From Pavona decussata (lineage: Eukaryota), in NCBI GenBank assembly GCA_977016875.1, contig CDRNST010000123.1, forward strand, positions 372,001 through 436,000: DNA of 64,000 bases, in the 5' to 3' direction. The translations under genes were made by a program, and so were the position numbers. Below, piece by piece: positions 1 through 30,068 of this stretch. Within the stretch, counting starts at the first letter, position 1. Each line of letters starts with the position of its first letter. A model generated the notes under the pieces. That model did no database searches. It had not been told where the DNA came from and saw only the letters and a program-made list of their open reading frames with translations.

Positions 1-132
1 CGTAGGCTAATTCAAACTAAACTACAAGGTCAAAAGAGAACTGCCGCATTAGATTTTTTCCGTGTTCGCGATCTTTTTAAGAGATTATCAGTACCTTGTA
101 TCTAAGCGAACATTTTTTATTTTCTCCTTCAG

Positions 133-1562
133 GACTGGTTGGCGTTTTCACAGAAAATTGCTCAGTTGACTTTCCAAGGAAAACTCCAGTTTGAAAATGG
201 TGGGGCTCCCCTGGAACAAGACAACTTCGCCTTCTGCAAGGTAATGATCATTCCTTCTTGTTTTGTTTTACGAACTTTTGAAGGCGATGAAAAAGCAAAT
301 CAGAGCAGAAAATGAATAAAGAAATAGTTTCTTCCTCAACCAACTACTCAGCATAGAGATTCGATTTAGCTCTCGGGAAATGTTGTTATTTGGAGATATC
401 AAAAGAGCGAGCTGATAACAGGATGGGGCGCTTATTTCTGTTTTGATCTCACACGTGAGAATGCCTGGACTGTAAACTGTAAAAATACCAGAAAACTAAA
501 GTATGACCTGTACAAGTAAAGCAAATCTCAGTTTAATCAGCTTCGCTCTTGCATTTTTCTTTGTGACAGGTGCTTAATTTTACTGAGAAATTTTATGCAC
601 CTCCTGTTGTCGTGGTAACAGTCAATCACCTATACGATAGCAAGAACGTGTACTCTGTTAAGCCGGAAAACAACGTCCTTAACACCTGGATAGAGGTAAG
701 TTATAATCATTCTTGACAAGTAGATTTTTCGGTCTATTTAATACAAGAAAAAAACCTTAAGAATCACAGTCACATGAATTTACAACCTTTAAATTACATT
801 TATGCGCCTTTGCGTTAGACACATTATCAAAACCTGGATCTTAGTAACCATTGCCTTGGTTTTGCTCCGTTTGCTGGGATGGAAGATGACATGACACCGT
901 TTGGCATATTTTGGCCACACACGTGGCCGTTTATTGTTAGCAAATAATGACATAATGAGAGAAGAATAACTCTAAATAAAGCTGTACCCAGCAAAGGTGA
1001 GGGGATACCCGCCACCGACCTAACCATGCTTACAAATTCTGTGGCTTTGAAGGGAGCTAGGGAGGGAGGGAAGTGACGAGTTTCCCTTGGATATGCTTAG
1101 TTCACTGTTGTATGATCTAGGCCAAAGAGGACAAATGATGGTCTAACCGAGCTTTATGTAGGGTAATTAGCTAGAGTATCTCCTTACTACCACCCGAACG
1201 GAAGCCACAGAACAGATGCACTTAAAAGGCGCATAAAATCATTTATTTGTTAAATAAATATCCTGTTAAACCCGGCAGTGTTCCATCAAGCTATTGACTT
1301 CGAAACCTTTCATTAGTTTCATGAAAAACACAAGCCATTCTCCTCGAGACTTTTCAAGTTTCATGAAAAAGAATTGTCTTCAACCTTGAAACCTTGCAAC
1401 AAGTTACTGCTTAGTACATTGATTGCCATTTTACTGATTTGAGTTCATTTCTGCTCTTATCACAGGAAACAACTATTTCTTATGTCCGCATTTGCATAAA
1501 AGACTTGGCAGGAATGAAGAGCCAACATGATCCGGTCAAAGTTGATTACGCAGTTATTGGAG
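133..1562 (+). CDS. Copy A: last three exons of first H-type-lectin-like triplet
   Basis: [20 protein letters not shown]...FAFCK / [20 protein letters not shown]...NTWIE / [14 protein letters not shown]...VDYAVIG. The F-x3-P-x-V, W-x-E, F/V-x2-C, V-x-W/Y-x-A pattern resembles the H-type lectin fold (family assignment inferred). Confidence 0.75.
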
Positions 1563-4500
1563 GTAAATAAGCAACATTATATGACAGTTTTACTTTCTGA
1601 TATTTTTTGAAGTCACCACGAAAGTCACCACGAAGTCACAATGAAAAAAGTACATGTATGTATTACTACATGTAAAAATGAAAATAACATATTTGAAATC
1701 ACTTACTTTTAAACATTCTGATTTTATTAATCCAGTCCTGTTACGAAACTTAACGAACGGACAAAAATGTCGTTTGTGACATAAGGTTAGCTAGAATTTT
1801 CGAAAAGCCAACAGCAGCTCAACTGGCAGATTTTGGGGATTTGAATCTGTTTGCTAAAATTTTGAGCCACTTTCAACAAAAGAATCTGAACAGATTAAAC
1901 GGCGTTTATAATAACAATGCTGTAAAACAGAAAACAGCATCCGAAGTTTTTCTTTTTGTTTGTTAAAATTCCTTCATTGGGTAAAACAGTTGAAATGGAC
2001 AAAAATTTGAAAGTTGTTTGCATGCAGAACATGACCCGGCCTTAGGTGAGGGGCCACAATCGCTTGGCTTCCAAGGAAACAACTACCAATCTATTTTTAA
2101 GTCTCGTTACATAACTTGCGATTTAATAATGCATTTTATAATTGTTTCTTTCGTTTACTTATTCCTTATAAACCCTCTAAAGTTAGAGTACTTAATTTGA
2201 GAAAAACAAAACAAAAAATTCTTTGCATTTCATGTTACAGATGTTGATCCGTGCATTAATGTCTCCTGTAAGTACTTTGCCGTTTGTAAGGCATTTGGTC
2301 CCAGGGACGCGCGGTGCATATGCGTGGATAATTGTCCGTCGTATGAAGAGCCTGTGTGTTCCTCTAATGGTACCACATATGACAACGAGTGTGTGTTCCA
2401 GCGAGAAATGTGCCATCTGAGAGGAAACTTCACTGTCTATCATCCGGGTGATTGTACAGGTAACATCACTGATTTCACTTCTTTCCCACAGCTGTAGATA
2501 AATTTGAAACAAACGTAAAGTGGACGATGACAGTTTATTGTTACACGAGATTCCAACAACACCGCAGCAACACCAAAACACACCATCTACGGTGTCCACG
2601 TCTGATAACAGTAGTCCCATTATAGGATTGAATTGACTTAGTGTTGTTAACTTTTTTGCAGGATTCCCTTCTCAAAAGGGCCGGCATCGCCTCCACCACA
2701 ATCCAGTTTGGGCTGAAGCGGTTTGTGAACAAGTTCCACTGGCTCCTTATGTCTTTTATCCTGACAAACCGGTTCACATACAGGTTTCTGTCAATCACGT
2801 GAACTTCTCAGATCCCTCATATGTCCATGAAGCAGTTGTTGCTTGGGTTGAAGAAATCATGGAGAACAATTTTACAGTTTGCGTTACACAGGCCGGGAGA
2901 AACGAGAAAAGAAATGGAGAAACGTTTGCAACTGTTGACTGGCTTGCCTACCAGGGGGCCCCTGACGGGGGAGTGTCTGGTGAAATGGACATGCCGACTT
3001 GGTGGACTGGAACGAGTTGTCGAACCGTCTCCCTTCCCTCGGTAAGAAGCTAATTGGTATTGGTTCATTTTTAAAACTGAGTTTCAAATTTTGATCTGCT
3101 CCGGTGGTTACAACACAAACCTTCGCACCAGCTTAGTCAGTGTACTGGAAGGTATATTGAACTTATAGACATAATGGGAAAAAGTACGGTCAATTAAATA
3201 ATTTCTCAACCCACAAATCAGAGACTTTCAAGATTCGAATTTAGTTTAGGCAGAAGATATTTTTTTTTACCGCTTCTATTTACATATAAACACTCATAGT
3301 GCCGTTAAAAATTAATCATTTTTTGTTGTCCTTGATTATAGAGCAAGTTTAAGTCGACGCCTACAGTTCTAGTGTCAGCGGAGCATGAAAGGCGTGGTGT
3401 AAAGCACGATGCATCTTCTGTGTGGTTAGAAGATATCACGAAAAATTCTTTTAAGATCTGCGTCCGAGAATTACAGAACTTTGATGGAGTTCACCAAAGT
3501 ATTTACGTTGTAAGTGGTTTTAGTTGTAACTCGTCTTATGATTTCCTCAAGTTCAAACTTCAACCGAGGCCCGTTGTATGAAAAACTGCATCCAATTTAT
3601 ACCTCTTTGTTGGACGGTACGGAAAAGACTAGATGAAAGGAAAACAATTGTTCTTGGAGTTTTTCTTGAAGCATACTCTTGATGTTTTCGATCCGTCTAT
3701 TTCATTTTATCACAAATGGAAATATGCTGCTTTCGATTTATACAGACTTGCACTGGGCATTCTTATAGAAAGATCACCATAGCTATTTTTTCTCTCATAA
3801 ACAATAACCTCTTGGACGGTTTACAAGTGACAACGTGATAACAAACAATGGCTTCTTTGCAGGATTGGATAGCGTTTGAAGAGCTTCACCGACCTCTGTT
3901 TAGAGAGCATGGAGCTATATACTTCTCCAATTCGAACAAGCCATCCCGAGATTTCAACTATGCTTTTTGTGAGGTAGGTAGGCCATTATTGCACTCACGT
4001 TTACAACCTCTGAAGGTCTTTAGACGGTAACGACTTCTTTTATAGATGACCACCCGCACGTCTGATCGGGAACATATGCACTTATCCGTTCACACTTGCA
4101 GTAGTGCCTACATTTGCGCATGCACCCTAACCCACTCATGCAGACAAACTTACGTATGCTAACACTCGCTTTTTCGTTTTTTTTTTTCTATTATTTTGCT
4201 CTTCTACTCTTTTTCTATCAGATGCACTCCTGCCCACTCATACATTCTCAACTTTTAATTTAATCAACCATTCATCTCTCCTTTCCCTATTTTGTCTCTC
4301 CTTTCTTATCTTTCTTCCCCGTTCTTTCATTTCTTCTTCCCTTCCTTTTGTTGTTTCATCCTATAGTTCATAATTGCTTGGTGGACTTTTTCAATTGTTT
4401 ATTTCATTCTTTGTTTGAAAATATTCTAAACTTACAAAAGGTTTGTTTTACCATCATGCACAAACAGTTGAATTTTCTTTCCTTTAGGATGTCGTGTTTA

Positions 4501-7500
4501 AGAAGCATTACAATGACTCTCCCGAAGTCTTGGTGTCAGCAAACCATTCAACAAGCGGAGGAAACCTTAATCCTATGTACAACTCCATTTCAGCTTGGGC
4601 TGAGGTAAGATAACAACGGCATTTGTAAGTTAATCTTAGCTTCACTTGTGTTTTGCGATGCACTGTAAGAGATGTGGGCATACAGTGTAGAGTGATCGTT
4701 AAGAGCTCGTTAGGCGAGAACCTTGGTTTGAGAATTGGTCCTAGCTTGCTGTCTCCTTTTGAACGGGTGAGGGTATTATAGAGGCGAGAACTGAGGTTGC
4801 GATAAACTGGCTTCCTATATAGGGAAGTATAGTTACCCTTTAGTGACTTTATGCCAAGAAAACGGGAGCTCATCTACGCCTTGATGGGCAACTTTAGGAA
4901 CAGACCAACTCTTAAGTTGTCTTTACGGTTGCATGTTACTAATTTCTAAAACATTTTATTTTTCGTATCTTTGCAGTACATAAACAAGACAGGCTTTAGA
5001 GCTTGTGTGAAGGAACTGTTTGTTCAACAACACGACCCTCTCTCAGTGTCTTATGCAGTTTTGCCAGGTAGGCTCTGAGTCATAGCTAATTATAAATAGC
5101 GCTGAAATTCTTCAACTACAAATCGATTCTCAAGAGAATGTTATTAGATGTATCAGATTTGATCTGCTTCTGTATAAAAAATTTCCCCAAGTCTAATTTA
5201 TCTTCTCATGCAAAAGTCCTCTTTTGAAAACAGAAAATTTTATTTCAGCCGGGACAAATATTATTCTCCTACGGAAAAGCTACTGCTAAGGAGGCAAGCC
5301 AAATTATGGGTTGGTTCACAACCTTAAAAGAATTTTAGCTTTTTTTTCCCTTTTTCGATTCGTGAAATAACTTTTTTGTAGCATTGGTCTGTCCTTAAAC
5401 ATTAAGGTAGCGACAACAGCTTCGTAGTTTAATTTATTACTTTATTTTTCAAAGATGTCTGTGAGCCCGGCTGGAGTTTCTACAATGGCTCCTGTTATTT
5501 CACCAGCGAAACATGTGAGACTTGGTCCAATGCAAGTATAACCTGCAGAGCCATGGGCGCTAATCTAGCTGCTATTGAAAACCAGGAAGAGAACGTATAT
5601 ATCCAGCACAGGCACAATGGTGACAAGGCGTGGATCGGTTTAAATGACATTGCCACAGAAGGATTGTTCAGCTGGGTAGATGGATGTCCTGATAAATTTC
5701 GCTACTGGGCTCAAAACCAACCAAACGACTTTAGAGGGGAGGACTGCGTTCACACCCTGGGGGCAGGGCATGGGTACATGTGGAATGACGTGGATTGCTC
5801 TGCCTGTCATCAGTACACATGCAAGAAAGGTAATCAGAAATTAGTTTCTGCCCAACTAGATACATTACCTTCCACTATACTGAGAGTAATATATATTCTC
5901 GAAAGAGACTCTAAAAGAAACAAAGAGATACTATTATTGAATCGGGGGAGATGGGTAGGGAACGGGGGAGGAGAAGGAGGAGGAAGGAAATGGACTTTCT
6001 TATAAGCTGATTAGACTTATGTTTTTTTTTTCTTTTATGTCATAGTAACAATTAATTTCCTTTGAATGCAACTTTCAAACATCTTTCTGCTCAGATTATG
6101 ACGACTGCAGCAGCAATCCGTGTTTGAATGGCGGCACCTGTGTGAACGGCAAAAGGAGATTTACTTGCGTCTGCTCTCGGACACACAAAGGAAGGACATG
6201 TGAAGGTAAATATACAACTCAGTTTTCTGATTTCTCTTTGAACCTATTACGCCTGGGATTTTTCTGAGTTTCTGTGTCAAGGCTGCTCCACCATCACCAC
6301 CGGATCACTAATAACTTCAAGAGTATTGAGAGTGTGACTTCAAACCTTGGAGGATACGAAGTGTTTCCATATCTATTTCCTTTGAGGTCCGCAAAATGGG
6401 ATGCTGACCGCATATGACGTGGATATCACGTCGTTTAACTGCACATCCGCAATATTGGTTTCTCAATTCAGAAAACCATCCGAAACTGATCTCAAAGTCA
6501 TGGAAACCGCTAAACAAAAGTTAAAATAGGTCAAAAATGTGTAAATGTTGCGAGGATAAACTAAAAATTTTTATTAAAAAGTAAGAAATCCAAAGTTTGA
6601 AGCATGGAAATATCAAGTCATTATAAACATATTTTTGCCATTTGATGAAAAGTTTGGTGTTGGTTTCCTTGATATTAAGGACGTTATGAACGTTCAAATC
6701 AAGCGCAGCTACTTTGTGCATCGCAGACATTTAATTGTGCCGTCAAAAGGAGATCCGACAATAAAATTCTTATTTTTTTATTTGTATTTTGTTGTTTTAT
6801 TTTTGTTTTGTTTTCATTATCTAACCTTTTGAAAGCGGACAAAGTTGGGCCGTGCTATATTTTTCTGTTATAGGGATGGAAACTATTAATTCTAATTATT
6901 CGTTGACTTTTTAACGTATTTATTGCCTTTCAGAGTTTGACGAATGCTCGAGCAACCCCTGTATGAATGGAGGCACTTGTACTGATGGAAACAATAACTA
7001 CACATGCGCATGCCCTTCACCGTATTTTGGCAAGCAGTGCCAACGTATGTACAACAAAATGCTTTTAATCATACAAAATATAGATGAGGGATGTTTAGTT
7101 CCATTATCCGTTAAGAACCTTGCACAACTGATGTTCAATTTTGGGGGATGACTTTAGTCTTAGCAATATCTATACCCTCGTTTATTTCGGGAAATAAGGC
7201 TTTCAGTTGCAGTAGCTGCGTTTTGCCGTAAAAAAAAAAAAAAAAAAACGGTTATTTATGATGTGTAAGTTTTCCATATTAGCCAAATTTTGATCGGTTT
7301 GTTGACCAAAATGTACGGATTTTTTGTGTAAAATTCGCTGCTTTGCAATTATTTTGGAATTGTTTTGGATATTGCCTTCCATATTGGCCGATCTAACTGA
7401 AATTTTAAAATACTCTGTAGCCGTCAGGGAGGCATGCGCATGTGATGTGAGCATAAAGTATGTAAAACCTCCTTTAAGACATTCTCGACCCCAGAGCCTC

Positions 7501-9208
7501 TCGGCTTTGACTACGTCATGCGCCAAGGCTGTAGGAAACTCTGCGCAAGACAGCTTTAGAGTAACGTTCCCTAAATTCTTATTTTACAGATACGGATGAA
7601 TGCATATCCAATCCATGTCTAAACGGAGGAACTTGTATAGATGGAGTGTACAATTTTACCTGTGTTTGTCAAGGCGTTTTCATCGGGCATAGATGTGAAG
7701 GTACTTTGTAGAATAGCACCAATGAAATAAGCCGTGTGGTGTTTTATATTCCATTGACCTGAAATGTGTGAGGAGTTATATAGAAGAGTTCAGGAAATCG
7801 TCATTATGATGTTTAAGGTCAAACACAAAGTATAATCTCCGTGAATTTGCTATTTAAATTGTGGAACAACTGAGTTCTTGGGAGAAGTCAGAACTTTACC
7901 CACATAATGATTGTTCAGTTCTAAAACCGCATTCGTAAATGCGATCTTTAGTAAGTTTGTTGATAGATTAGGATAATTGTTCAAAATGTATAGCTCATAA
8001 TGTAAAAATTTCTGATCAGTTTTATGCAATGCGCTACAATTTAAAATTCGTTCAAGTTTGAAAATTTGATAGCAATTAAGTTGATAGTTCTCTTTTAAAA
8101 TAAATCATAGGTGACCCAGTTAGTAAAGACTGACATTGATTGTCTCAATGAAAAAGAGGCTGAAATCATTTTTTTGGAAAACCTTGGCCAATTTTTTTCA
8201 AGTTGCAATACATTTCCATTCTGGCCTTCCCCTGAGTACCAAGGAACTCTCAGAAACTCGTTCAAAGTGTCCTTGCTTCCAGGTCGAATCAGAATTTGGA
8301 AATGTCGGTTTTTGTGGAGGGAGGAGAAGCGAAGTATAAGGGGAGAAACCCTGGGATTAACATCGAAAAGCGTGGAAGAGTGACAGGCACTGTAATTGAA
8401 ATGCAGTGTACCAGCACAGTAACAGTAACAGTGTGCAGGCACTGTAACTGAAATGCAGTGTATCAGTTCAGGTGCAACAGCTGCGTCATTAACAATACAT
8501 TGGTAGCACAACACGCTTTTTCCATGACCGCGTAAGAGAACATATCAATAACGATAACTCCTCCGTTAAAAAAAAAAAAAATATCTCTTCCTGCCAGAAC
8601 AACGACTATAAAGGCATTAATATCAAGATTATTATGAGCGAAAACGATCCCGCTAATCTACGCCTCTACGAAGCATTTTACATTAGAAAATACAAGCCCA
8701 CACTCAATTCACGAGTGGAATGTACTGAATTCGCAGACCTTCTACTTTAATATTGTATTTTAGAGACTACTCTCATACGCTTTTATAGCCCACAACCATC
8801 ATCAAAAAAATTTGTATTCCACTCACAGTTTATTTCTATAGCTTTCACACATACGTCACATTTTTTACACATTTCACCTTTCACCCTACACTCTCTTTGC
8901 GTATGATATATAGCGTGCGCGGAATATTTTCTTATCCCTGATGATGCCGTTGATCGGAGAAAGCTTGGATTTTAGTTTTTACTTTTAAACAGCAGTTTCA
9001 GGCCTCATTAGAACAGTTTTTATATATTCTTAACCATGCTGCTAAAGGACAACATGAACAGATTACTGTAAAAATCGATGACCCAATCAGAAATCGAGCA
9101 TAATTTCCAGGAAAACAATTTTAATTTCCGCTAGAATATGCCCGTTATTTGGATGTTGACTATTTAACAATTATTCCGCGAGCGCGCGTTGGATATGAGA
9201 TGATTGAT

Positions 9209-9241
<33 letters not shown>

Positions 9242-12200
9242 TATCATCTCATATCCAACAAGCGCAAGTGGAATAATTGTTTTATTAAAAACAATCAAGA
9301 AATATTCCTAAATCTTACTGAATTCGCTGCGTAAGAATAACCAGCAGACAATTTAATGGGCGCTATTTCTCGGCCATGGTATAATGGCTAATATACCATG
9401 GCCGCTAAGCCAATCAAATCCCTCGAATTGCATTATACAATGATTGAGTTTTTAATAATGGGGTTTATCGAATTAGAGGTTGTCGTAATTGAGCAACATA
9501 TGTGAACTTATCAGTTTGGAAGTTAGTTTGAGGCTTTTACTATTTTTATCTCGCTAATTTTCCGCTGTTGTTTCTACCTATAAGAATTTTTTTATAATGT
9601 ATTTTAACTTGATTATTTCCACATTTTTTGCGAGATCTGAGTCTTTGTTTTTTTCTCTTTCTTGTTAAGTTGTTGCAGGAGTATCGTGTAAAAATCTCCT
9701 ACAAGCCGGCTACACCTCAAGTGGAACATACTCTTTGAAAGTCAACGGTCATTTTTTCCAGGTTAGTTTATATTCTTTCTGTTTCTTCAACGTTTTCAAT
9801 GTTAATATTGATCAAGTACTAAAATCACTACCTTCTAGTAATTCATAGGTGCAAGATTATCAATGGGATACATTTATATTTTAAACGCTGTGCTATTTAA
9901 AAAAAGCAGTAATTAGTGACGATTCATGTGTGATGTCTGATGCTTGATAATGAATGAGGCATTCATAGACCAAAAAGCAAATTCTCGAAACTATTTGGTT
10001 ATTAGCGTGTCTTATTGAACATTCATTTCGAGAATTTAAATTGATGTCGGCATGAAACTTGCGTCAAAATACAAGCAATGTGTTTATGATTAGACAGGTT
10101 TTATTGGTCAATGTAATGCACTTGAATGGGCTACTATCCCAATAGCCCTTTTCACGGTTAACTCTGCTCATTTGAATTACAGTGAAATCTAGCATGTATG
10201 TGAGGCAATTTCGGACTATTTTGCAGTTTTAGCCCGAAATTACCTCGCATCGACGTTGGATAACATTGTAATGCAAATGAGAAAAATCAATCGTGAAAAT
10301 GGCTGTTATGTCCTGAAAGAATTAATGTAATTATTCCACTCACCTGTCACACAATGGGTAAGGACACACAATGGGTAAGGAAAACTACAGAACAGCAAGT
10401 TAGCAGGAACACTTCTCGTGTTGATTCCTGTAACTTCTTACCAAAAAAAAAAAGATATGTTTTGGCCGTCTTTTCCTTTATTCGAAGTAGGTCGATCTTA
10501 GTAGAAGTGGGAGTCTTAGTACTTCTGCCAAATTACAATAATTTAACCCCAATCGAAACACACGAGGTTCGTTTTCAAAGAACTAGATATCACGTCACAA
10601 AAATTAAGTAAGGCTCTTCCCAGCAGGTTCTTTAATAGTTTTTCTCAAACTTTTCTCTTTCTTAATGAAAAAAAAAAAAAAAAAGACAATAAAATAAGTT
10701 TAACGCCGGTTTTTCAAACGGGAGTTTTCGAGGTTAAAGTTGCTTTTAAAGTTACGTATTGAACAGTCAAACTGTCCTTCTTCAGGCCTGGCGCATCGGA
10801 GGTAAGATCTGAATTTGGTGTGGATTTCGTTTTTAGCATACCAAAAACCACAGAAATTTTGCCACAAAAATTCTTAAATAAAGGGTGCGTTCCGCTCCAA
10901 TAAGAAGCCGCGAGCACCTTAAAGGGACAGTATCACGCTATTTTTAGTAACACATGGAAAATCGGAAAGACGCTATTCGGTTGATAGCAACCAAGATATA
11001 ATGACAGAATTCCATTAAAAGGCTATCAGAATGCAAAGAAACTAGCCACGGATATTTTCGCCGGCAGATGACCAAGATAGAGAGGGGTTCAAATTTGAAA
11101 ACGTCTGGCAGACGTTTTCAAATTTCGCTGTTGTAACGCACTAAAAATCGCCGGTTGTACTATATTTTGGTTCAACCTTTCGTCTTAGAATCACTATTAA
11201 CATTTCTTTAAATTAGCGCTTGAGAAATCAAGTAACACAGTGTTCAAAGTTTAAAGTTAGTGAATTTTGGTCAAAAATCATGTCATCTCCCATGATACTG
11301 CCCCTTTAAGCGTGATCTAAACTTCGTTTAAATAATCAGCCCTGAACACAACACAACCTCCGTGGCCGTGACAACATATAGTTACACTCTCGCCTTGATC
11401 GCGTCCCCCCCCCCCCCCCTCCCCTTTCGCTACATTCAAAGTGTTAAGAAACTTAAACATGAGATGTCGCGTTCCTTGCTCTATCCGGCAAAATAATTTA
11501 TTGCAACTGGGGAAAGGGGGCGGGTGGTCGAACAAATTATGACACTCAAAAACAAAAATTATAACCAAAAGACAACATTGATAACAAAGAATGGAGAGGA
11601 AACCAAACACATGGCTGTCGAAAGAGCAAGCAGAAGAAAACGTAGCTCAAGTAGGTGACTTGGTGAAAAAAGTAGCAATTGTTATACTAACCTGCTAATG
11701 CACACAAGCTAGGGCAAGTGAAACTTCTTTTGCAGCCTAGTATCGGACTATGAATAGTGAACTTCTCGTTTGACTGATTCAATCAATGAAGTACGATTAT
11801 TACAAAACATTTGTACAACCTAAATACCTAGAACAAGAGATAGAGGAAATAAGGCTGTCTTAGGCCCCTTTATGCAAGTTTGTAATCTAAACGAACATCA
11901 CCAGGAGCCGCCCGACGCGAACCGGGTAAACGGTCACTTGAAGTTACAGCTTTGGAACTGAGTGCGTGTGTCATACCTGCCAGCTATAATGGATCGGATC
12001 AGAGAATTAACTCTGCAGCGTTTGTTAAAGTGCTAAGTGAACCCATGAAAATCCTACTGAGGGTCATTCTTAGTAAGGAAATGTAATGGGAGCCACACAA
12101 AACAAAGAAAAACATTTCTGACCTCGGAGGCCTTCACATTTGCCGTAATTACCACCATTATTATCCACGAATTGCTCAGTTCTGTCCTCGTTTTTCAGTT

Positions 12201-13379
12201 CGTAGAGCAACGGACGATCAAATTCCGAGGTCGTGGGTTCGTTTCCCGCCGAGGTCGGAGATTTTTTCTTTGCCTTGTGGGTCTCCCATTTCCTTACTAG
12301 GGCTAACGCTCGGTGGGAAATTCATGGGTTTACGTTGCGTTTCAACATACAGTGCAGAGTTAATTCTCTGGCCATCATTTGTGCCACTAGAACTTAAACA
12401 AGCGGCGCAACATTTATTTGTACCATTCATATCAACTTGGACACAATAAAGCTTTTCAGGCGCTTACAAGTCCACCGTCAATAAACTCAGTTTTGAAGGG
12501 TTTTCGACAAGGTCACAAACAGTGTTTTTTCTTTTCGGATTGCTTGGTAACTATGTTATTGGATGTCAGTAGTGGATGTAGGCTTGACCTTATTTGCATG
12601 GAAATTTAAGGGCCCACTTGTAGATGTTCTCACAGATAAACCGTACTTTTCTCCGTGAATTTTCTTTCTACTTTTTTCCAATGGATTTTAAACGGGGTGT
12701 GGTTTATCTGCCAATTTGGAGGGCAGTACGGAATGCGCAGAGTAATGACAGCTGTAATGAGTCACGCACTGTAATCTAAAACAAAAGTTCTCAACAAAGG
12801 TCCTGGGACTTTTAGTGAGACCTTGTGTGTTGTCTTTTATTGTTGGTGATGTTGTTAAGTTGGGTCTAAGAGCTCTTATTACAGCCTACATGTCTGGAAA
12901 GCTGATATTTGAGTTAGAAGTCCTTGTAGTTCTCATCTCCTTTAGCCCTATACACTGACAACATAAACTTCTGCAGTGAAATTACAGCAGTTTTGCCGCT
13001 GCACGTATTTTCCGTTCCATATATTAGTGCATCACATCTTTCGCCTCCAATTAGTGTCTTATCCATGTCTTTTAAGTCATCAAGCTTCATACAACCTGCA
13101 ATTTGAATCAGAGAAACGTTAGAACAATGTTAACCAGTAATGGTTAGTGTAATTTAGTGTAATTTATAGTGTGCGATACGTTTTTAACTCAGATATTCAA
13201 TTTGTGTACATATTTTTAACTTGCTTTATCACATTTCGTATTTCATACTTCAATATTTTAGTTTTTTAACCTACTGCGACTATCTTAGATGTATTTTAAG
13301 CACTGACTAATTTTTAAGGAGAGAGGGCCACTAGTTAATCAGAAATTCTGTTATGTGTTACCCTCTTTAAATAAAATTG

Positions 13380-13456
<77 letters not shown>

Positions 13457-14677
13457 AATGCAACTCACTCAGCAAAAGAACGAACTACTGGCTTCCCGAC
13501 CCCCTTCCCCCTCCTTACAATTTACACTTAGGGATATCACCTAAGTTGGACAGCATCTGCTATGCAATACAGCCCGCATGCATTTCATTGTAAGCAAATC
13601 ATCTTGGCCACATAATATAAAAACGCAATGGAAATTCCTTTCAATTCTTGACTCAGTACGTTCACGTGATGAATAGGTCTCATTAATGAGCATTAATTTA
13701 ACCAAATTCGCGCCCACCTTATGACGTACCCCCACCTGGACTTACAGACCAGACCATCCTTGACGGCATGCCCCCTATGAAATAATCCGCCATACTTGGT
13801 GGAGCACTGCCTACGGCAGTGTTCCTACTCGAGTTCCCGAGTATAATTTGTCACCTTTTTCAAAATTCCTGGCTTATTTTTTTTATTGTTAGAAAATGTA
13901 GCTATGACTTCCCAATTCAGACGCCAGCATTCTACATTTATGCATCATTCCAGCTTTTGTGTGATTTCTTAGCTAAACGTAGTTCGTAAAATTGGTTTCA
14001 TGCAAGGTACTCAACGATTCCTCTTTGTGCTTTAAGGTCTACTGTGACATGTCCAATGGTGGCTGGACTTTAATCTCACGCTATTCGAATGCTGACACTG
14101 CAAACTGGATGCAGTACAGCGGCAGCTGGTGGTATGACCGAACAACATCGTACGGTAGCGTTACCAGTCCATCAAACAACTATGACATGATATCACCCGC
14201 ATTCTGGCTCGTCCGAGGCAGTTACATTAAAATAACCCGCAGTGATGACAGCTCTAATACAGCCTTGTTGTACCTAGCGGTTGCACAGGTGGAAGAACTT
14301 TCAGAAGCTTTATTACCGGTTTCGGGAACTTTAGATATGGTAACATCTGGAACAGCGACGCATGCCGTGGATCCTGTTATGCATACTTTGGGGGACGCTA
14401 TTCATCAACAGTGGGTTTCAGCCATGCATCCTGCAGCAGCAATCTTCAAAGCTCTTCTTATCTGTCATTCTGGTGTGACTGGGGTGGCGGTGACGGAGCT
14501 GTGATGATGATTGGTGGTGGAGGTGATTATTGCAACAGGGCGGATCATGGGATTGGTATCACAGAGGCTAATCGGGCTCGGTTCGGATCCGGCAACCTCG
14601 ACTGCGGCGGCGATGATGACTTTGGTGATGACTGTACCTCTCCGACTGGTTATTCTCTCAATCTGTGGATAAAGTAG
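133..14677 (+). CDS. Multi-lectin gene copy A (5' part upstream of window): H-type-lectin-like repeats, follistatin/Kazal, CTLD, 3x EGF, fibrinogen-like domain; frameshift in terminal exon
   Basis: Exons with AG/GT boundaries and consistent phases: 133-240, 570-695, 1466-1562, 2241-2459, 2662-3041, 3342-3509, 3863-3973, 4488-4604, 4977-5067, 5455-5829, 6095-6205, 6934-7044, 7590-7700, 9670-9761, 14037-14677. Each has a colinear homologue in copy B. The frame is open until a shift near 14273. Confidence 0.88.
799..1237. mobile_element. Possible MITE in copy A intron
   Basis: 13-bp inverted ends TTTATGCGCCTTT / AAAGGCGCATAAA; not seen in the copy B intron. Confidence 0.45.
2241..2459 (+). CDS. 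Copy A: follistatin (FOLN + Kazal) exon
   Basis: [56 protein letters not shown]...YHPGDC; 10 Cys; PVCxSNGxTYxNxC motif; phase 1-1. Confidence 0.92.
2662..5067 (+). CDS. Copy A: second H-type-lectin-like triplet (5 exons)
   Basis: Three repeats containing [20 protein letters not shown]...[30 protein letters not shown]...DWIAF and [21 protein letters not shown]...VSYAV. Confidence 0.8.
5455..5829 (+). CDS. Copy A: C-type lectin domain exon
   Basis: [13 protein letters not shown]...WSNASITC...[10 protein letters not shown]...WIGLND...WVDG...WAQNQPND...EDCV...WNDVDC...YTCKK. Confidence 0.95.
6095..7700 (+). CDS. Copy A: three 111-bp EGF-like exons (6095-6205, 6934-7044, 7590-7700)
   Basis: D-D/E-C-x-SNPC-x-NGGTC...F/Y-TC-x-C...G-x2-C; all phase 1-1. 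Confidence 0.93.
8510..8985 (+). mobile_element. Penelope-like element 3' fragment (GIY-YIG C-terminus and terminal repeat)
   Basis: [17 protein letters not shown]...[17 protein letters not shown]; downstream CTGATGA...GAAA motif. Confidence 0.75.
8933..8970 (+). ncRNA. Minimal type I hammerhead ribozyme-like motif
   Basis: ATCC...CTGATGA, stem II CCG/CGG, GAAAGCTT, GGAT; lies in a PLE terminal repeat. Confidence 0.5.
9162..9460. repeat. Palindrome-ended non-autonomous repeat (Crypton-type, tentative)
   Basis: AACAATTATTCC...GTTGGATATGAGATGAT / ATCATCTCATATCCAAC...GGAATAATTGTT hairpin of about 115 bp. Confidence 0.6.
9670..14677 (+). CDS. Copy A: fibrinogen/intelectin-like C-terminal domain (exons 9670-9761, 14037-14677), frameshifted
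   Basis: [18 protein letters not shown]...[15 protein letters not shown] is a fibrinogen-like N-terminal motif. Homology to copy B moves to another frame at TACCTAGCGG (14271-14280). Confidence 0.85.
10923..11305. mobile_element. TTAA-flanked MITE (Kolobok-like)
   Basis: TTAA|AGGGACAGTATCA...TGATACTGCCCCT|TTAA. Confidence 0.75.
11990..12380. repeat. Head-to-head pair of tRNA-related repeats (foldback)
   Basis: Arms 11995-12128 and 12250-12375 are diverged inverted copies; tRNA-like GTAGAGCA...GGTCGTGGGTTCG at about 12195-12255. Confidence 0.6.
13380..13456. repeat. (TTAC)n microsatellite, tail of a LINE-like 3' end
   Basis: About 19 perfect units directly after AATAAAATTG. Confidence 0.95.
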
Positions 14678-15440: not shown

Positions 15441-17572
15441 TGATGAGCTTAGGTGAAGAAAAAAATGTATGCTAATGAGCTTACGGTGAGTTGAAATCAC
15501 CAATGGCTTATCATTAACTGCAACAAGAGAAACCGTTTTGCACCTTTGCGTGTTATAATTCATGGTCGGAATGGTCTTTTTTCACACGTGCGGAGTTCCG
15601 ACAGTCACGCAGAGAGAAACAGAATCCCAGACATCGTGGTTTGTGCAGATCAAACGCGCGAGGAATGCTTTCGTTTTATCCACGCGAACGGTAACCAGTA
15701 ACGAAGGTTCTTACGCTTTTTGTAAGACATGGTTCCTTTGCTCGAATAGTAACTCCAGGGCACAGACTTAATATAATATGAATCACTCAAAATAGGCAAC
15801 TGGGCAATTTAGCATTTTAAAAGAACATCGAATCAAAGAACAAACGCAAACAATTGCTGCCAAAAGCAGTAGAATCGCGGCACAGAGTTTGGGACATTTA
15901 TTTACTGTACAAAATGTAACAATATTTATTGTAGCACAAGCCGCGCCAGACACTGTGTTTTTGTGAACGTTGTAACCACATTAAACAAAATTCGGAGTAT
16001 TTTTTCCACAAAAAAAAAAGAAAGAAAGAAAAGTGATACAATTGTACATTGATGATACAAAGCAAGTGATCGTCTCCGCGCGTTGCATTCGGTCGTCCCT
16101 AAAATGGAAGAAAAAAGGAATAGTTTATAAACTGGAGTGCGAGGTTGGTATTCCTCTCATTTAGAGTTATAAAGAATTGGGACTACAAAGCAGTGTTATT
16201 GTATACTACATTTGTACTCGACAGAGCAGCTATGCGCAACGCAGAAGCAAAATATTACAAAGCAGAATATTACAGTAAGCTAGATTAATTAATATCCTGC
16301 CCGACAGATAACAACAGCTCACTGAAAAGAAAGCTGACTACCCAAGTAGAGCAGAATTGGTTATTGCGATATTTATTAGTGGAAGCAGAGAATTCTGCTC
16401 GATAAGCTAAAGCAGAACCTAAGTTAGTGTTCATAGCGCGAGGTTAGCCGGTTAATGTTCTGCTCGACAGATAACAACAGCTTAATAAAGAACTGACTAC
16501 CCAAGTAAAGCAGTTTGCTCGACAGATAACAACAGTTCTGGGAAGAACTGACTACCCAAGTAAAGCAGTCTGCTCGACAGATAACAACAGTTCAATAAAA
16601 ACTGACTACCCAAGTAAATCAGAACAGGATTAATATCGCGCGGTGATGGTTGAATTAATGTGGCGCGCGGTAGATAAAAACAGTGCAGTAAATAAATGGC
16701 TAAGAGCCAAGCTATGCAATACAATAAGTTCAAAAAACCGAATCTTAAAATTGATATAGCCTATTTACAAACTTCACTACTCACCAATGCCTTGCCTTGC
16801 TAGCGCTTTTATATGACCGTGAATCCATGTCGAATACGCGCGAGTTTCCCAACCTCGATCAGTTTCCCGCCATAATAACAAAGATTCAACAAGACTTCGA
16901 CTCTCGGCAATGGTCTGAAGAGGTACGTCCTTCCAAAATATCGTTCTAATTCCTAAACGTATACGTTGCTTTTCGACATTTCAATCCTATGATACTTGCG
17001 TTAAATGCTGAGAGGAAATTTGTTAGCCAAATTCAAAGACAGACAAAGCTGTGTCAATTCACACTAATACAACTCAATTTCAGAAGTACATTATTTTCTC
17101 GAAGCTGGCGTCGATTTATCTGAGCATCGCATTCCCAGGTGAAGAAAATAAAAACGAATGACCCAAGAACTATTTTCCTCGGCTTGATGGTAGATAAAAC
17201 TTACCAAGTCGAATATGCATGTGTAAAGGTCAATCCCCGAGCAGAGGAAGTGGTCTGCTGTTATTCAATAAATTAAATTGCTGCCCGCCGCAATTACTCT
17301 CCGATAAATACAAAAAATTCCATTCCTTTGTGACAGTCTGGGATGGGAAATGTTATGAAAACGAAGGCAAACCAATGGCAAAATCGGCAGTTGACCGTGG
17401 AAAATCATACAATACCACTCCGAAAAACACTGCGCGTCGCAAGGCACGAGTTTGTCTCGAAAGCGCAAGATAAAACTGCGTGACTATAATACACTGTGGC
17501 TGTTTCATGTTACATTTCCAGGCATACGATGACACCTCGCGTACAATATTAAGAGAACCCCTGGGTGGAATT
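15441..17572 (+). mobile_element. About 2.1-kb non-coding interspersed element, copy 1
   Basis: Highly similar inverted copy at about 43566-45648; internal tandem array of about 52 bp; GAGC...GCTC-like ends. Confidence 0.8.
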
Positions 17573-19994: not shown

Positions 19995-22408
19995 TGTAGT
20001 ATGTTGTCGAAGACTTTATTTCATCCGACTCCTGCACACAGGCCACGTGTGCTTTCTGCATTTACATAAAACGTGTTAGCCTACTTAAATATGCGTATAC
20101 AAAATATAACATATAATAGTTGCTAATTAGCACATGCATGCTGATATGTTACATCCCCTTCTTTTAAAAAGCTATGTTAATTGAAACGAAAACAAACAAA
20201 ACAAAAACATTCATTCGAAAAGGGTTCACTGTCTAGAGATCATACATCATACTAATAATATCTACTAAAACAAGAGTCAGAGGTTAAGTCTTTCTGGTGC
20301 CTGGACTTCACGTCCCGAGCGAGATTTTTCTTGGACCCCCCTCGGTTTCCGCTAAGGTGGAACATTGTGGATTGGCGCTTGAGGGTCGTGCATTGCTTCT
20401 TCTCTCGTGGATTGGCGCCTGAAGATTGCGTAGCCATACTTCCTTGGGGAATGTAGTTAGACAAGTTGTTTGCCAGATTGTTGGAAGCATTGTTTGGTCT
20501 AAGATGGATCCTATTTCTTCGTAGTTGGGCACCAGCTCTAGTTTGTACAATATATGAGCGGGGTGTGTTTCCTTGATCTATGACTCTAGCACGGCTCCAC
20601 GTTTTTCTCACTGGATCTTGTGCAAAGATGGCATGGTCCATGTGTATTTTAGGGAGATCCCTGGTATGCCTGTTGTAGTAGTAGCTCTGATTGTCTTGTC
20701 TCGCTTTGTGCCAATCTCTAACTTCTTCTTGGTTCTTTGATGGTCCAACAGTACCATTGAAGCATTCTGGGTACATCTCCATCAGTTCTTGCTTATTTCT
20801 GATTGGTGGCCGCTCTTTGAGTGGTACTTGACTTTCGATGTAATTCGGGCGTTTCTTTCGAGTACCTGAGCTTTGAGCTGGGGTCACGAAGCTGTTTGTC
20901 GGAGCAGCCTGGTCTAGTTGATTTGTCTTGAGTGAACAGTGTAATGAGATTAGTTTCAGTGCCGTGCATGCCTTTAGACCGAGAATAGCTGGCCCTGGAG
21001 TATCTGTGACGTAAAAAATGCAGTTTATCTTCTTCTCTTTGTACTTGCAAGGGATGTTTATAGTGCCAAGCTGCTTGACTATAGACCCCCCGTATGCTGA
21101 AAGGACGGCTTTGTTCTTTTCCAGTGCTTCTGGTTTGGGATTTCCTTCGTCGTCAAACTTCTCTGGGGCGATTATGCGCAGTAGCCTTACGGGTAAAACA
21201 TTGCTCTGTGCGCCCGTATCTACTTTACATTGAAGATTAATTTTCCGCTTCTTTTCTGGCTGAGTTATCTCAAGTGTTGCAAAGGCTTCGTCGCGTGTGT
21301 CGTGTATCGAGTGTTGCGTGTCTTCTATGGCGTTAACCTCGATGCTACGGATTGTCAGAATTTCATCGTCGTCGTCGTCGTCGTCTTTATCCTCAATCGC
21401 GTGAATAACTTTTTTGAAGACCGACTTCGTTCCTTGGTTAAGTTGTTTCCGTTTGCCGGATCGGCAAACAGATTGCCAATGATTAGCTTTGCCACATTTT
21501 CGACATGATGTGCCGTAGGCTGGACATTTGTTCCTCGGGTGTTGTTTTCCACAGTTGTTACAGAACTCCCTTTCTTGTTCCCTACGAATGGCATTAATAC
21601 TCCTGTCCTCTTGGAAGTTTCTGCTACTTCCTGCTAGTGTCTTCATGTGTTTACTTGTTGCCTCGTGGCTCCTTGCAATCTCAATAGCGGCCGCAAGGGT
21701 TAGTGATTTGTCTCGACTTATGAGAGCCTTTTGAACATCAGGATTTCTCGATCCCCAAATAAGCTGATCTAGGACTCTGTCTTCAATTTCGGCGTTGTCG
21801 CGAAATTGGCACTTTGCTGCTAGATTTTTTAATCTTGAAATAAAATCATCCACTGGCTCGCCTTGCTCTTGTCGTATTCCTTGAAGCGTGTATCTATGAA
21901 TTCGATGACTTTTTTTTTGGCTCCAATTGATTTTCGAACCGTTCGAAAATAACGTCCGGCTTTTTCCTGTCTTCCTCCTTTGCGAATGCCCAGCTGTTGT
22001 ATATATCCAAGCCTTTTTCTCCTGAACAGAGTAGGATGTAGCTCACTTTTTCTTCGTCGTCGGTGCCTTTGAGAACGCTTGAAAACATAAGCTGGCATTT
22101 TTGTTTGAATCTTGCGAATGCAGTTATTGGGTCAGGGGCGTCCCAGTCCATCTGCGGCGATGCGAAAGGCGTTGCTGCTGTCATCATTCGCTTGTATTGA
22201 CCTCTCTCTACTTAACTTTAAGGATTATTCTTGTAAAACGCTGCCACCATGTAGTATGTTGTCGAAGACTTTATTTCATCCGACTCCTGCACACAGGCCG
22301 CGTGTGCTTTCTGCATTTACATAAAACGTGTTAGCCTACTTAAATATGCGTATACAAAATATAACATATAATAGGTGCTAATTAGCACATGCATGCTGAT
22401 ATGTTACA
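19995..22408 (-). mobile_element. Ty3/Gypsy (Mag-like) LTR retrotransposon, internally deleted (no RT/RNase H/integrase core)
   Basis: 159-bp TG...CA LTRs (19995-20153, 22250-22408; 2 mismatches); 5-bp TSD ATAAC; PBS TGGTGGCAGCG (tRNA-Leu-like); PPT AAAAGAAGGGGA; gag and protease on the minus strand. Confidence 0.95.
20252..22187 (-). CDS. gag-pro: Gag-protease fused in frame to integrase C-terminal tail; +1 frameshift in an A9 run near 21910
   Basis: Tandem zinc knuckles CNNCGKQH..C and CRKCGKANHWQSVC; protease VDTGAQSN; then YYNRHTRDLP...PRSYIV...RRNRIHL (integrase C-terminus). Confidence 0.88.
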
Positions 22409-24504: not shown

Positions 24505-27025
24505 TTTATTTATTTATTTATTTATTTATTTATTCACCACGACATACAAACATAGAAAGTTACAATGAATAATAGACTAGGATTACAAGTACATAAGTTT
24601 AGAGTAAATAAAAAATAGTAAAAGAAGTAAGAAGTGGCGAGGAGACCTCAAGAAACCCCCGGGCTTATACTGAGAGGTCTCCTCGGAGATATGTTGGGAC
24701 TTAAAGACCAGTAAAGACATTGTGTTGAGATTTTTTAACATACGGTGGTGGTAAGACTATAAAAACATAACAGAGTCGGACGTTTCATGCAATTAACTGA
24801 GGAAATCAAGAAGCTTTCTTTTGAAGGTGGATAGACTAGGGGAAGACGTAATTGATAATGGCAAAGCATTCCATATTTTTGGCCCTCTATAGAGTATAGT
24901 AAATTGCTTGATATTAGTTCGGCAGGTGTGAGGTCGAAAATGAGCTGAGGTTCTGGTATCATAATTATGAATTTGACCACCAGTCGGAAATAAATTTAGA
25001 AAGGGCGAAGGCAGCAAACGTTGGTGATAGGAAAACATAAATTTTGCAATATAAAAGGAATTCACTTTAAAAATATCTAGGATATTCAGTTGTGCAAATA
25101 AAGGTGCAGAAGGTGCAAGGTGATTAGAATTTGTCATAGCTCGCACAGCTCGTTTTTGAAGAAGAAAAATGCGATTTAAGTTTGTTACATAAGTAGAAGA
25201 CCAAACTGTAGTACAATAAGTTAAATAGGGATAAATTAAGGTATAATACAAAGATTTTTTAGTGTTTGATGACAAAAGGAAACGAAATCTGTACATTATA
25301 CCAACGGACTTAGAGATTTTCTTGCAAATATAACTGATATGCGATTTCCAGGTGAGACCTTCATCAATATAAATACCTAAGAACTTAACTTCTGTTACTT
25401 GCTTGAGGGGTATACTGTCAAGTGAAATTTGGGAGCTCATGCGGACAGATTTTTGTTTGGGTTTAAATATAACATAATTGGTTTTCTTTATGTTAACAGA
25501 AAGTTTGTTTGATTTCATCCATAAGCTAATCTTAGTCAGTTCACTATTCATTACAGAGGCAACATGATCAGGGTCTGAATTGGAGTAAAAGATACTAGTG
25601 TCATCTGCAAAGAGCAGGCATTCTGCCAGTCTGGTTGTTTTGGGAAGATCATTGATATATAATATGAAAAGTAAAGGGCCTAATATGGAACCCTGTGGAA
25701 CACCGCATCTAATTATCTGTTCGGAGGAACGGGTATCGTTGATCTGGACGAATTGGGTACGGTTGGAGAAATAACTTTTAATCCATTGCAATGCTAGTCC
25801 ACAGACACCATAATGTTCAAGTTTCTCAAATAAGATTTGGTGGTCTAGCGTGTCAAACGCTTTAGAAAGGTCAAGAAAAACACCTGCCGTGATTTCATTT
25901 TGGTCAATGGACGTTGCAATTTTATTAACAAGGTAAGTTAGCGACAGCGCAGTGGAATGGTTTTTACGAAAACCAAACTGGAGTTGGTAAAAGATATCAT
26001 GGCTATTTGCGAATTCTACTAGTCGATTGTGCATGACCTTTTCGAAGAATTTCGAAAAATTAGGAAGTAGTGAGATTGGTCTGTAATTAGTGAATAAATC
26101 CGGTTCATCACCTTTAAATACAGGAATCACTTTGGCAAGTTTTAGCTTGTCTGGGAATATTCCTTTGGAAAAGGATAAATTAATAATATTCTTAAGAGGT
26201 TCCGATACTACTTCAAAAGTGTTTTTGATAACATACATAGAAATATCGTCATATCCTGGGGCTTTCCCAGACTTCATGGACATACAGATTCCATTCAGCT
26301 CTTCAACAGTCGTCGGCTTCAAAATCAGAGACTCATTGATCTGATCATTCAAAAAAGAGTGGAAAGAAGAGTTCACCGGAGGTATTTTCGCTGCTAAATT
26401 AGGTCCTACGTTAGCAAAATAATTACAGAATCCATTTGCTATTTCTACAGGGTCGGTAAGAATGCTACCATCAGATCTAAATGACGAAGGAAAAGGAGGT
26501 CTACATTTACGCTTGTTGATAACTTCATTGATTAATTTCCAGGTCTCCTTTAGGTCATTTTTAGCCGAAGCAAACCTTTGGTCATAATAATGGCGTTTGG
26601 CAATTCTAATGAGATGGGTTAATTTGTTTCTGTAAGACTTATATTGTAACTCCCTCGTTGGATTAGGTGATCTCAGTAATTGTCTATACAGCTTGTTTTT
26701 CTTTCGAACAGAAGCTAATAAAGATTTGGTTATCCATGGGGAATAAGGCCTTTTACAATTCTTAACTTTATGAGGCTTCAATGGGAAACATAAATTATAA
26801 AGCCGCGAATATTCGGACAAGAATTTATTGTAAGAATCATTGGGGTCTTTATCATGTAGAAGTTCAGTCCAATCGACTTGAGAGAGGCGAGTTTTGAAAT
26901 TATTTAAATTTGCCGTAGAGAAGTTTCTCACAGGTCGGTTGCCAATTCTTTTATGAACATGAACAAAAGAGTCATCAGAGACATACGCAAATACTGGTAA
27001 ATGATCAGATATGTCACTTATATAA
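24505..27025 (-). mobile_element. 5'-truncated LINE of the L2/CR1 group (Crack/Daphne-like)
   Basis: ORF2 begins at the endonuclease end motif SDHLPVF; 3'UTR hairpin (GAGGAGACCTC...GAGGTCTCCTC); (TAAA)n tail at 24505-24535. Confidence 0.92.
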
Positions 27026-27036
27026 CTCATGCCCAT
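24793..27036 (-). CDS. LINE ORF2 reverse transcriptase (747 aa, uninterrupted)
   Basis: Motifs KAPGYD, NYRPISLL, QFGFR, FLDLSKAFD, GVPQGSILGPLLF, LFADD, KFLGI. Confidence 0.95.
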   Translation of the reverse strand: MGMSYISDISDHLPVFAYVSDDSFVHVHKRIGNRPVRNFSTANLNNFKTRLSQVDWTELLHDKDPNDSYNKFLSEYSRLYNLCFPLKPHKVKNCKRPYSPWITKSLLASVRKKNKLYRQLLRSPNPTRELQYKSYRNKLTHLIRIAKRHYYDQRFASAKNDLKETWKLINEVINKRKCRPPFPSSFRSDGSILTDPVEIANGFCNYFANVGPNLAAKIPPVNSSFHSFLNDQINESLILKPTTVEELNGICMSMKSGKAPGYDDISMYVIKNTFEVVSEPLKNIINLSFSKGIFPDKLKLAKVIPVFKGDEPDLFTNYRPISLLPNFSKFFEKVMHNRLVEFANSHDIFYQLQFGFRKNHSTALSLTYLVNKIATSIDQNEITAGVFLDLSKAFDTLDHQILFEKLEHYGVCGLALQWIKSYFSNRTQFVQINDTRSSEQIIRCGVPQGSILGPLLFILYINDLPKTTRLAECLLFADDTSIFYSNSDPDHVASVMNSELTKISLWMKSNKLSVNIKKTNYVIFKPKQKSVRMSSQISLDSIPLKQVTEVKFLGIYIDEGLTWKSHISYICKKISKSVGIMYRFRFLLSSNTKKSLYYTLIYPYLTYCTTVWSSTYVTNLNRIFLLQKRAVRAMTNSNHLAPSAPLFAQLNILDIFKVNSFYIAKFMFSYHQRLLPSPFLNLFPTGGQIHNYDTRTSAHFRPHTCRTNIKQFTILYRGPKIWNALPLSITSSPSLSTFKRKLLDFLS

Positions 27037-29995: not shown

Positions 29996-30068
29996 ATGGG
30001 GGTGTTCCCAGCTGTACAGCTGTTAGCTACGCTCTTAACATCGTGCGCTTTTCCCTATTTGGCCGAAC
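29996..30068 (+). CDS. Copy B first coding exon: signal peptide
   Basis: MGVFPAVQLLATLLTSCAFPYLAE with a phase-1 GTGAG donor, in frame with exon 30313. A homologous 73-bp exon lies at 63055-63127. Confidence 0.8.

Follow-up and report, generated by a model that had tools for sequence, protein, structure and literature searches.

Patchwork divergence among tandem LePin-like genes of the coral Pavona decussata points to recombination between paralogues

Immune receptor families encoded in tandem evolve by birth and death together with gene conversion, in large arrays with pseudogenes and exchange between paralogues. In the FREPs of Biomphalaria and other diversified fibrinogen-related lectins of invertebrates, the N-terminal part is constant and the fibrinogen-type recognition domains attached to it vary; the FREP scaffold belongs to the immunoglobulin superfamily (IgSF). 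The genes described here appear to share these features, with Kazal, C-type lectin and putative H-type lectin domains in place of IgSF as the scaffold. They lie in a window (the whole analysed stretch) of 64,000 nucleotides from Pavona decussata (assembly GCA_977016875.1, contig CDRNST010000123.1, positions 372,001 to 436,000), which holds two copies, A and B, of a gene encoding a LePin-like putative multi-lectin. Unlike in FREP-type families, the variation in this array is germline and runs between old module lineages; no somatic diversification was found, but no search was aimed at it.

LePin, a secreted lectin composed of H-type, C-type, Kazal and EGF domains, is a marker of the alga-hosting cells of the soft coral Xenia and contributes to their formation; it is so far the only lectin shown by knock-down to aid algal uptake in a coral (bioRxiv 10.1101/2022.12.13.520278). 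In the LePin literature searched, each species is taken to have a single such gene or a few. Like LePin, A and B combine putative H-type repeats with a Kazal domain, a C-type lectin domain and EGF domains in one gene of presumably secreted type, and the host is an anthozoan. Unlike LePin, they carry at their end an additional intelectin-like head, which Pfam fails to recognise, and they belong to a series of approximately 21–23 tandem copies, several of them pseudogenes, whose 3' modules appear to have been re-assorted. The copy number, mosaicism and head of LePin are undescribed in the LePin literature searched, and no description of a LePin-type scaffold with an intelectin-like head, of an array of this size or of a base-sharp border between constant and variable parts was found there. 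Tandem immune-type lectin genes are already known to evolve by birth and death with exchange among copies, and we regard the array as a solid, moderately novel instance of this kind of evolution.

Self-comparison of the window revealed two collinear gene copies on the + strand, A at about 79–14677 and B at about 36328–61139. A is a partial gene in the window, its 5' end lying before the window start. Comparison of open reading frame (ORF) fragments and Pfam searches identified the Kazal, C-type lectin (CTLD) and EGF exons, as well as several exons with weak similarity to H-type lectins, and 15 exons per copy were defined by AG/GT borders (Table 1). All searches were run exon by exon, and pooled statistics are sums of per-exon counts. 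The encoded order is putative H-type repeats, Kazal, more putative H-type repeats, C-type lectin, three EGF domains and the intelectin-like head. The Kazal domain (PF07648, 43.4 bits against a cut-off of 22.8; window 2201–2494), the C-type lectin domain (PF00059, 67.7 bits against 22.6; window 5433–5831) and EGF-like domains (PF00008, 33.9 bits on EGF1; three 111-nt EGF exons per copy) are present. The H-type lectin model PF09458 gave weak matches to single exons (E 0.013–0.068, below the 24-bit cut-off), and zero matches to the 126-aa exon in the exon-by-exon Pfam search.

Both copies are members of different sub-lineages of an array of about 21–23 tandem genes of the same family, which extends over roughly 1 Mb of the contig. 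The head exon has 50 matches genome-wide (to be read as at least 50), 21 of them on the window contig (C123) at 0.24–1.2 Mb and the others on contigs C88, C382 and C53, and the 5' 3.3 kb of A has 23 matching places on C123; the genome thus holds further family copies elsewhere. Within the array, heads are 65–98% identical to the B head at the protein level, and heads of other clusters 47–59%. A and B were compared in full with seven more copies, named g4, g5, g10, g16 and g17 in the array and h1 and h2 on C88; g5 is the gene directly upstream of A and is of B type.

The divergence between A and B is a patchwork. An earlier note on this DNA, based on amino acid differences counted by hand, had described a front part with few differences and a sharp change after the CTLD exon, and its counts were borne out almost to the residue. 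The Kazal exon differs at 3/72 positions, the first exon of block 2 at 7/126 and the CTLD exon at 5/124. Beyond it the differences amount to 9/36 full codons in EGF1 (counted earlier as 9/37), 6/36 in EGF2 and 15/36 in EGF3 (7/37 and 16/37 with the split codon, as in the hand count) and 17/27 in the N-terminal exon of the head, where 16/26 had been given. The start of the last exon, codons 1–73, drops to 8/73, and the rest, previously put at roughly 35–40% different with indels, differs at 44/134 residues (33%) with three indels.

Synonymous divergence (dS) is equally non-uniform, passing from 0.23 to 0.8–2 and back. The ten 5' exons pooled have a dS of 0.23 (74.5/376 sites), close to the distance expected from the 76–79% identity of their introns, and differ at 80/594 third codon positions (0.135), homogeneously among exons (p=0.58). 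Against these exons, third-position differences are raised in EGF1 (0.33, p 0.003; dS 0.84), EGF3 (0.53, p 1e-7; dS 2.07), the head N-terminal exon (0.59, p 1e-7) and head codons 74 to the end (0.46, p 1e-15; dS 1.90), and not significantly in head codons 1–73 (0.18; dS 0.38). The 3' part is heterogeneous in itself (p=1e-5), and a MaxChi permutation test gave p<=0.001. The ratio of nonsynonymous to synonymous divergence (dN/dS) is about 0.1 in the 5' exons and 0.12–0.15 in the deep blocks, with 0.12 for head codons 74 to the end. As judged from these low ratios, the deep blocks are old module lineages under purifying selection rather than rapidly diversifying sequence.

The introns were found to behave as the note had described. 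Upstream of the CTLD exon they align, A 2611–5685 being continuous with B at 76–79% identity; from 5834 to about 11660 nothing outside the exons can be aligned; and the last intron partly aligns again, in five collinear patches of 70–85% identity (A positions 11662–11716, 11805–11980, 12615–12653, 12763–13017 and 13902–14014) close to the coordinates reported earlier. These patches look like homologous intron and not like a high-copy repeat, because the dispersed genome-wide matches fall at 11978–12432, outside them. The break is sharp: the last base of the CTLD exon is also the last homologous one, even in comparison with g5, which lacks the 2.1-kb transposon that lies in intron 10 of B. Local alignment of A introns 8 and 9 with those of g5 gave z scores of 121 and 28 over shuffled sequences, and about 0 for introns 10, 11 and 12. 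The idea that the break is a transposon artefact was rejected, since g5, of B type and free of the insertion, still has no similarity to A introns 10–12. A 2.1-kb inverted match between the downstream flank of A and intron 10 of B was considered as an inversion scar at the break and also rejected; the sequence is a repeat scattered over the genome in at least 40 copies of 93–98% identity.

Two side observations concern the last intron of A. The stretch at 11978–12432 is a dispersed repeat. It contains an inverted pair (12000–12130 and 12246–12370) and has many genomic copies at 76–86% identity. In addition, 11560–12276 matches, at 89–90% identity, the last introns of one gene on C88 and of the next gene downstream of B (C123:460930-461650); the heads of these genes are only 54–57% identical to that of B. 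This stretch is another small patch of the mosaic.

A and B do not form a sister pair, and nowhere are they each other's closest relatives. The 5' 3.3 kb of A, introns included, is 88–92% identical to nine other copies and only 76–79% to B, and B is 92–99% identical to g5 and h2 from end to end. The 3' end of A is closest to g17 (88%), followed by h1 (84–85%) and g10 (82–84%). The match of A to g10 (92%) extends only up to about 6436, and those to g4 and g16 (89–90%) only up to 7047. The C88 copies were considered as alleles of A and B, which was rejected: h1 is 75–92% identical to A, and h2 is 93–99% identical to B and lacks three exons. Both were treated as paralogues.

Per-exon trees are incongruent. 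In a 2.2-kb block from exon 6 to the CTLD exon, introns included, three clades are each supported at 100/100, namely alpha {A,g10,g4,g16}, beta {B,g5} and gamma {g17,h1}, and in the tree of the head exon the groups are {g16,B,g5} (100/100) and {A,g17} (98/98). According to the approximately unbiased (AU) test, the head exon rejects the alpha clade (p 3.7e-62), and the 5' block rejects both {g16,B,g5} (p 8.5e-58) and {A,g17} (p 1.7e-8). The EGF1 tree has the 5' topology with long branches, g4 and g16 standing on the A side; in the EGF2 and EGF3 trees these two shift to the beta (B) side, and the CTLD-exon tree is star-like. Copy g16 combines a head of B type (dS 0.07) with a 5' half of A type, for which dS to B is 0.22. 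Across the nine copies the N-terminal exons are 92–100% identical at the protein level, with a 5' dS of at most 0.33 for every pair. In block-wise matrices EGF1, EGF3 with the head N-terminal exon, and head codons 74 to the end each have lineages at dS 1 to saturation. Among 19 array heads, dS in codons 1–73 never exceeds 0.46 and that in codons 74 to the end reaches saturation; the 65 pairs with dS above 1 in the latter have a median of 0.38 in the former. All three lineages share the exact base at which the 5' part gives way to the 3' part.

Because the segment trees conflict so strongly, we consider the patchwork to be quite probably the footprint of repeated non-allelic recombination between paralogues of the array, accompanied by birth and death of copies. 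The exchanges would have proceeded by gene conversion and/or unequal crossing-over between tandem paralogues of the same orientation. The 5' 5.8 kb, which ends with the CTLD exon, would have a recent coalescence in all copies, in exons and introns alike (K about 0.1–0.3); from the very start of intron 10 on, at least three old lineages of EGF/head modules (dS 0.8 to saturation) would have been re-assorted onto this common front half. The border may be sharp because homology ends there, so that conversion tracts starting in the shared 5' half would have to stop. The 3' part would itself contain smaller converted patches, such as head codons 1–73 together with the 3' half of the intron before them; this 2.6-kb shallow patch between deep sequence looks like gene conversion, and chimeras such as g16 could have arisen by either route. 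Selection may keep the head types apart or act against their homogenisation. The proposal of the earlier note, unequal crossover or gene conversion, is therefore upheld at the level of the array, where dS and tree conflict support recombination, but the exchanges appear to have taken place between array lineages and not of A with B. Neither of the outcomes named in that note as speaking against it, a dS that is even along the gene and per-exon trees that agree, was observed. Likewise, its picture of a constant N-terminus and a variable head stands for the family, as seen in nine copies, although the pair from which it was drawn consists of one dead gene and one polymorphic null.

Several points weigh against recombination as the source of the pattern. 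In EGF2, which lies within the deep part, A and B have a dS of 0.39 and third-position differences (0.19) that do not differ significantly from the 5' exons, and dS estimates from exons of 36 codons are noisy. Even within lineages, head codons 1–73 have about half the dS of the rest (0.15 vs 0.34); part of the contrast between them could thus be a local effect of rate or constraint. A near-identical conversion tract between A and B was not found, and no single event was dated or given a donor. The full comparison covers nine of the approximately 23 copies, some of them pseudogenes, and the apparent homogenisation of the 5' half is judged from copies within this genome. At locus L044 of another species (P0005), which encodes a related head, no LePin-type exons were found within 10 kb upstream.

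Both copies in the window carry lesions. In e7 of B a TGA replaces a Trp codon, which is Trp in all other copies compared; the donor of its intron 9 reads AT where the other eight copies have GT; and its CTLD exon is split by a miniature inverted-repeat transposable element (MITE), for which a first look gave at least 2688 genomic candidates, the 40 that were scored being 96–98% identical. None of the three lesions is present in g5 or h2. The head of B has private changes, M161T and G166S, at two family-invariant positions. B is a pseudogene, dead in this haplotype. The last exon of A has lost one nucleotide: after 14273 it reads TAC-CTAG, where relatives have TACACTAG. The deletion is absent from eight other copies. 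Contigs of X1 and X3, which are of the same species and probably of the source material, agree with the window, whereas an RNA-derived, spliced contig of a third sample, X5, is identical over 14228–14387 except for an extra A. The deletion is hence genuine in this individual and yet polymorphic, and the allele without it is transcribed. The splice from the head N-terminal exon to the last exon (9761|14037, GT..AG) was present in contigs of two probable RNA runs (X5, X7) and not in two probable DNA runs, which shows that A is transcribed. With B dead and A a polymorphic null, the array also evolves by birth and death.

In an RNA-derived contig of X5, a loose end at window 14037–14040 links the conserved beginning of the last exon to another preceding exon, one of g4 type, which indicates that at least one other paralogue is transcribed in that sample. 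Two of the compared copies also look degenerate. In copy g17 (C123:917301-930772) the CTLD end is frameshifted, three codons of the Kazal exon are deleted and no EGF3 is detectable; h2 (C88:59329-80500) is missing the Kazal exon and the two exons that follow it, and the donor of its exon 2 reads CT.

These lesions raise the question whether the divergence profile could mainly reflect pseudogene decay, that is, unconstrained drift without any constant/variable design. Such an account would draw on the three lesions of B and its changes at family-invariant residues, on the frameshift of A at head codon 78, and on the fact that 19 of the 35 amino acid differences in the 5' exons are private to B, so that the small divergence of the "constant" part is largely due to the decay of B. 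Decay, however, would raise divergence evenly and not increase dS eight-fold in specific blocks. Only 25 of the 99 amino acid differences in the 3' part are private to A or B; at the remaining 74, A and B each have a state shared with other copies, which is mostly the case, or both are unique. The frameshift of A is absent from the expressed allele of another sample, and the head sequence behind it still has a dN/dS of 0.23–0.38 against its relatives. We consider decay as the main cause to be very unlikely.

We give hardly any credence to a single whole-gene duplication of uniform age, after which relaxed or positive selection would have driven the 3' exons faster without recombination. The strong purifying selection on the 5' exons fits it, as do the young B-type heads with their hypervariable patch, where dN/dS of the head is about 0.95 between B and g16. 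The excess, though, is also synonymous (dS 0.23 vs 1.9–2.1) and comes with non-homologous introns 10–12; dN/dS in the deep blocks is as low as stated above, and the trees conflict with AU p <1e-7. The capture of EGF plus head cassettes from other gene families by illegitimate exon shuffling at the intron-10 border seems improbable as well, even though the border is base-sharp in all three lineages with zero similarity beyond it and the same head domain occurs in other clusters on C382 and C53. All lineages have the same number of exons, EGF exons of 111 nt in the same phases, and head exons that are homologous; heads resemble one another more within the array than they resemble heads from other clusters; and the switch of lineage by g4 and g16 inside the 3' module requires homologous exchange. 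Recombination between homologous paralogues of the array thus remains our preferred explanation.

The head at the C-terminus had been taken for a fibrinogen domain, but the fold predicted for it is intelectin-like (X-type lectin) and not that of a canonical fibrinogen domain. Identification at the level of sequence failed and only the fold search was informative. The Pfam fibrinogen model PF00147 had no match at E <=10 on A-type or B-type heads, and matched only a distant paralogue, at E 0.028 over 29 residues; a phmmer search of PDB sequences gave no match at E <=1, solved intelectins included. A word search with the head found 1235 relatives, both named matches being from Stylophora pistillata, and the nearest ESM-Atlas cluster is an unannotated cnidarian group labelled "fibrinogen C-terminal domain-containing". 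The head was modelled from an alignment of 30 sequences, with a predicted local distance difference test (pLDDT) score of 67.8, falling below 50 in residues 164–202, and a predicted template modelling (pTM) score of 0.76. In Foldseek the top six hits of this model were human intelectin-1, Xenopus XEEL and lamprey LSVL (E 3e-7 to 9e-6, probability 1.00, TM 0.55–0.59), and canonical fibrinogen domains appeared only at E >=0.05. The head resembles intelectins in its fibrinogen-like N-terminal motif (VYCDM..GGW) and a conserved IGGGG stretch; it differs from them in that sequence identity is only 13–15% and in that it ends a long multi-lectin chain, whereas intelectins are free trimers.

The deeply diverged codons 74 to the end correspond to the C-terminal portion of the head. 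In intelectins this portion carries the calcium and ligand site. Within the clade of B-type heads (dS <=0.1; head exons L001–L007), amino acid changes cluster in a hypervariable patch, CR[RH][NY]C[ILH][AVT][WYH]F, and dN/dS of the head between B and g16 is 0.95. This clustering is suggestive of local diversification, and the patch may be a specificity loop.

Table 1. Coordinates, in the window, of the modelled exons of both copies, their lesions, the divergence blocks and associated repeats.
Feature	Position	Strand	Remark
A e1 (putative H-lectin block 1)	133–240	+	AG/GT borders; 93.5% nt identity to B
A e2	570–695	+	exon model; weak PF09458 match
A e3	1466–1562	+	exon model
A Kazal exon	2241–2459	+	PF07648; dS 0.17 to B
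A e5 (first exon of block 2)	2662–3041	+	all seven aa differences from B private to B
A e6	3342–3509	+	exon model
A e7	3863–3973	+	intact Trp codon where B has stop
A e8	4488–4604	+	exon model
A e9	4977–5067	+	GT donor intact
A CTLD exon	5455–5829	+	PF00059; dS 0.23 to B; last homologous sequence before break
A EGF1	6095–6205	+	PF00008, 33.9 bits
A EGF2	6934–7044	+	exon model
A EGF3	7590–7700	+	no closer to any one B EGF than to the other two
A head N-terminal exon (FBG-N)	9679–9761	+	conservation across paralogues
A last exon (intelectin-like head)	14037–14677	+	stop TAG 14675–14677
A 1-nt deletion, last exon	14273–14274	+	frameshift, head codon 78; premature stop 14502–14504
Deep block 1 (introns 10–13 and first 1.9 kb of intron 14; holds EGF1–3, FBG-N)	5830–11660	+	introns not homologous to those of B-type copies
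Shallow block 2 (3' part of last intron and last-exon codons 1–73)	11660–14255	+	five collinear patches; dS 0.38
Deep block 2 (head codons 74–end)	14256–14677	+	44/134 aa; dS 1.90
Dispersed 2.1-kb repeat downstream of A	15441–17572	+	at least 40 genomic copies, 93–98%
B e1	36382–36489	+	exon model
B e2	37201–37326	+	exon model
B e3	37567–37663	+	exon model
B Kazal exon	38355–38573	+	exon model
B e5	39692–40071	+	exon model
B e6	40367–40534	+	exon model
B e7	40875–40985	+	in-frame TGA 40878–40880
B e8	41529–41645	+	exon model
B e9	42264–42354	+	intron-9 donor 42355–42356 is AT
B CTLD exon	42713–43545	+	split by MITE
MITE, 451 bp, in B CTLD exon	42944–43394	.	terminal inverted repeats; target site duplication GATGGAT, 42937–42943 and 43395–43401
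Dispersed 2.1-kb repeat, 17 bp into B intron 10	43566–45648	-	in h2, not in g5
B EGF1	46377–46487	+	exon model
B EGF2	47934–48044	+	exon model
B EGF3	50188–50298	+	exon model
B head N-terminal exon	53275–53372	+	5 codons longer than that of A
B last exon (intelectin-like head)	60501–61139	+	open frame; private changes at family-invariant sites

A few further observations concern the exons and the surroundings of the two genes. EGF2 of A ends in C at 7044, where the other phase-1 exons of A and B end in G, which changes the split codon and weakens the donor context. An open stretch of 118 aa at 30321–30677 (+) resembles an H-type lectin repeat and is probably an upstream exon of B, which would place the start of B at least 6 kb before its first modelled exon. 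The stretch at 62759–63146 is 70% identical to 29705–30088 and may belong to the next gene downstream. Between A and B, a remnant of a retroelement of the long terminal repeat (LTR) type occupies 19995–22408; its direct repeats (19995–20153 and 22250–22408, 98.7% identical) flank a gag/protease-like ORF of 533 aa on the minus strand (20252–21853). A 747-aa ORF resembling a non-LTR (long interspersed nuclear element, LINE) reverse transcriptase lies in the same intergenic region at 24793–27036 (-).

For the reading of such loci the case holds a lesson of method: a striking constant/variable profile between neighbouring genes can be real and yet involve two disabled copies. It is possible, if rather doubtful, that the array is a germline "constant plus variable" recognition repertoire for the symbionts or microbes of the coral, in which a uniform scaffold would carry shuffled ancient EGF/intelectin-like cassettes, a hypervariable loop would diversify among young copies, and polymorphic null alleles such as that of A would give colony-specific glycan specificities. 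If there are indeed about two dozen tandem LePin-like genes with interchangeable heads and presence/absence polymorphism, expression or knock-down work that treats "LePin" as a single gene would mix paralogues, and the specificity for partners or microbes could be combinatorial and could differ between colonies.

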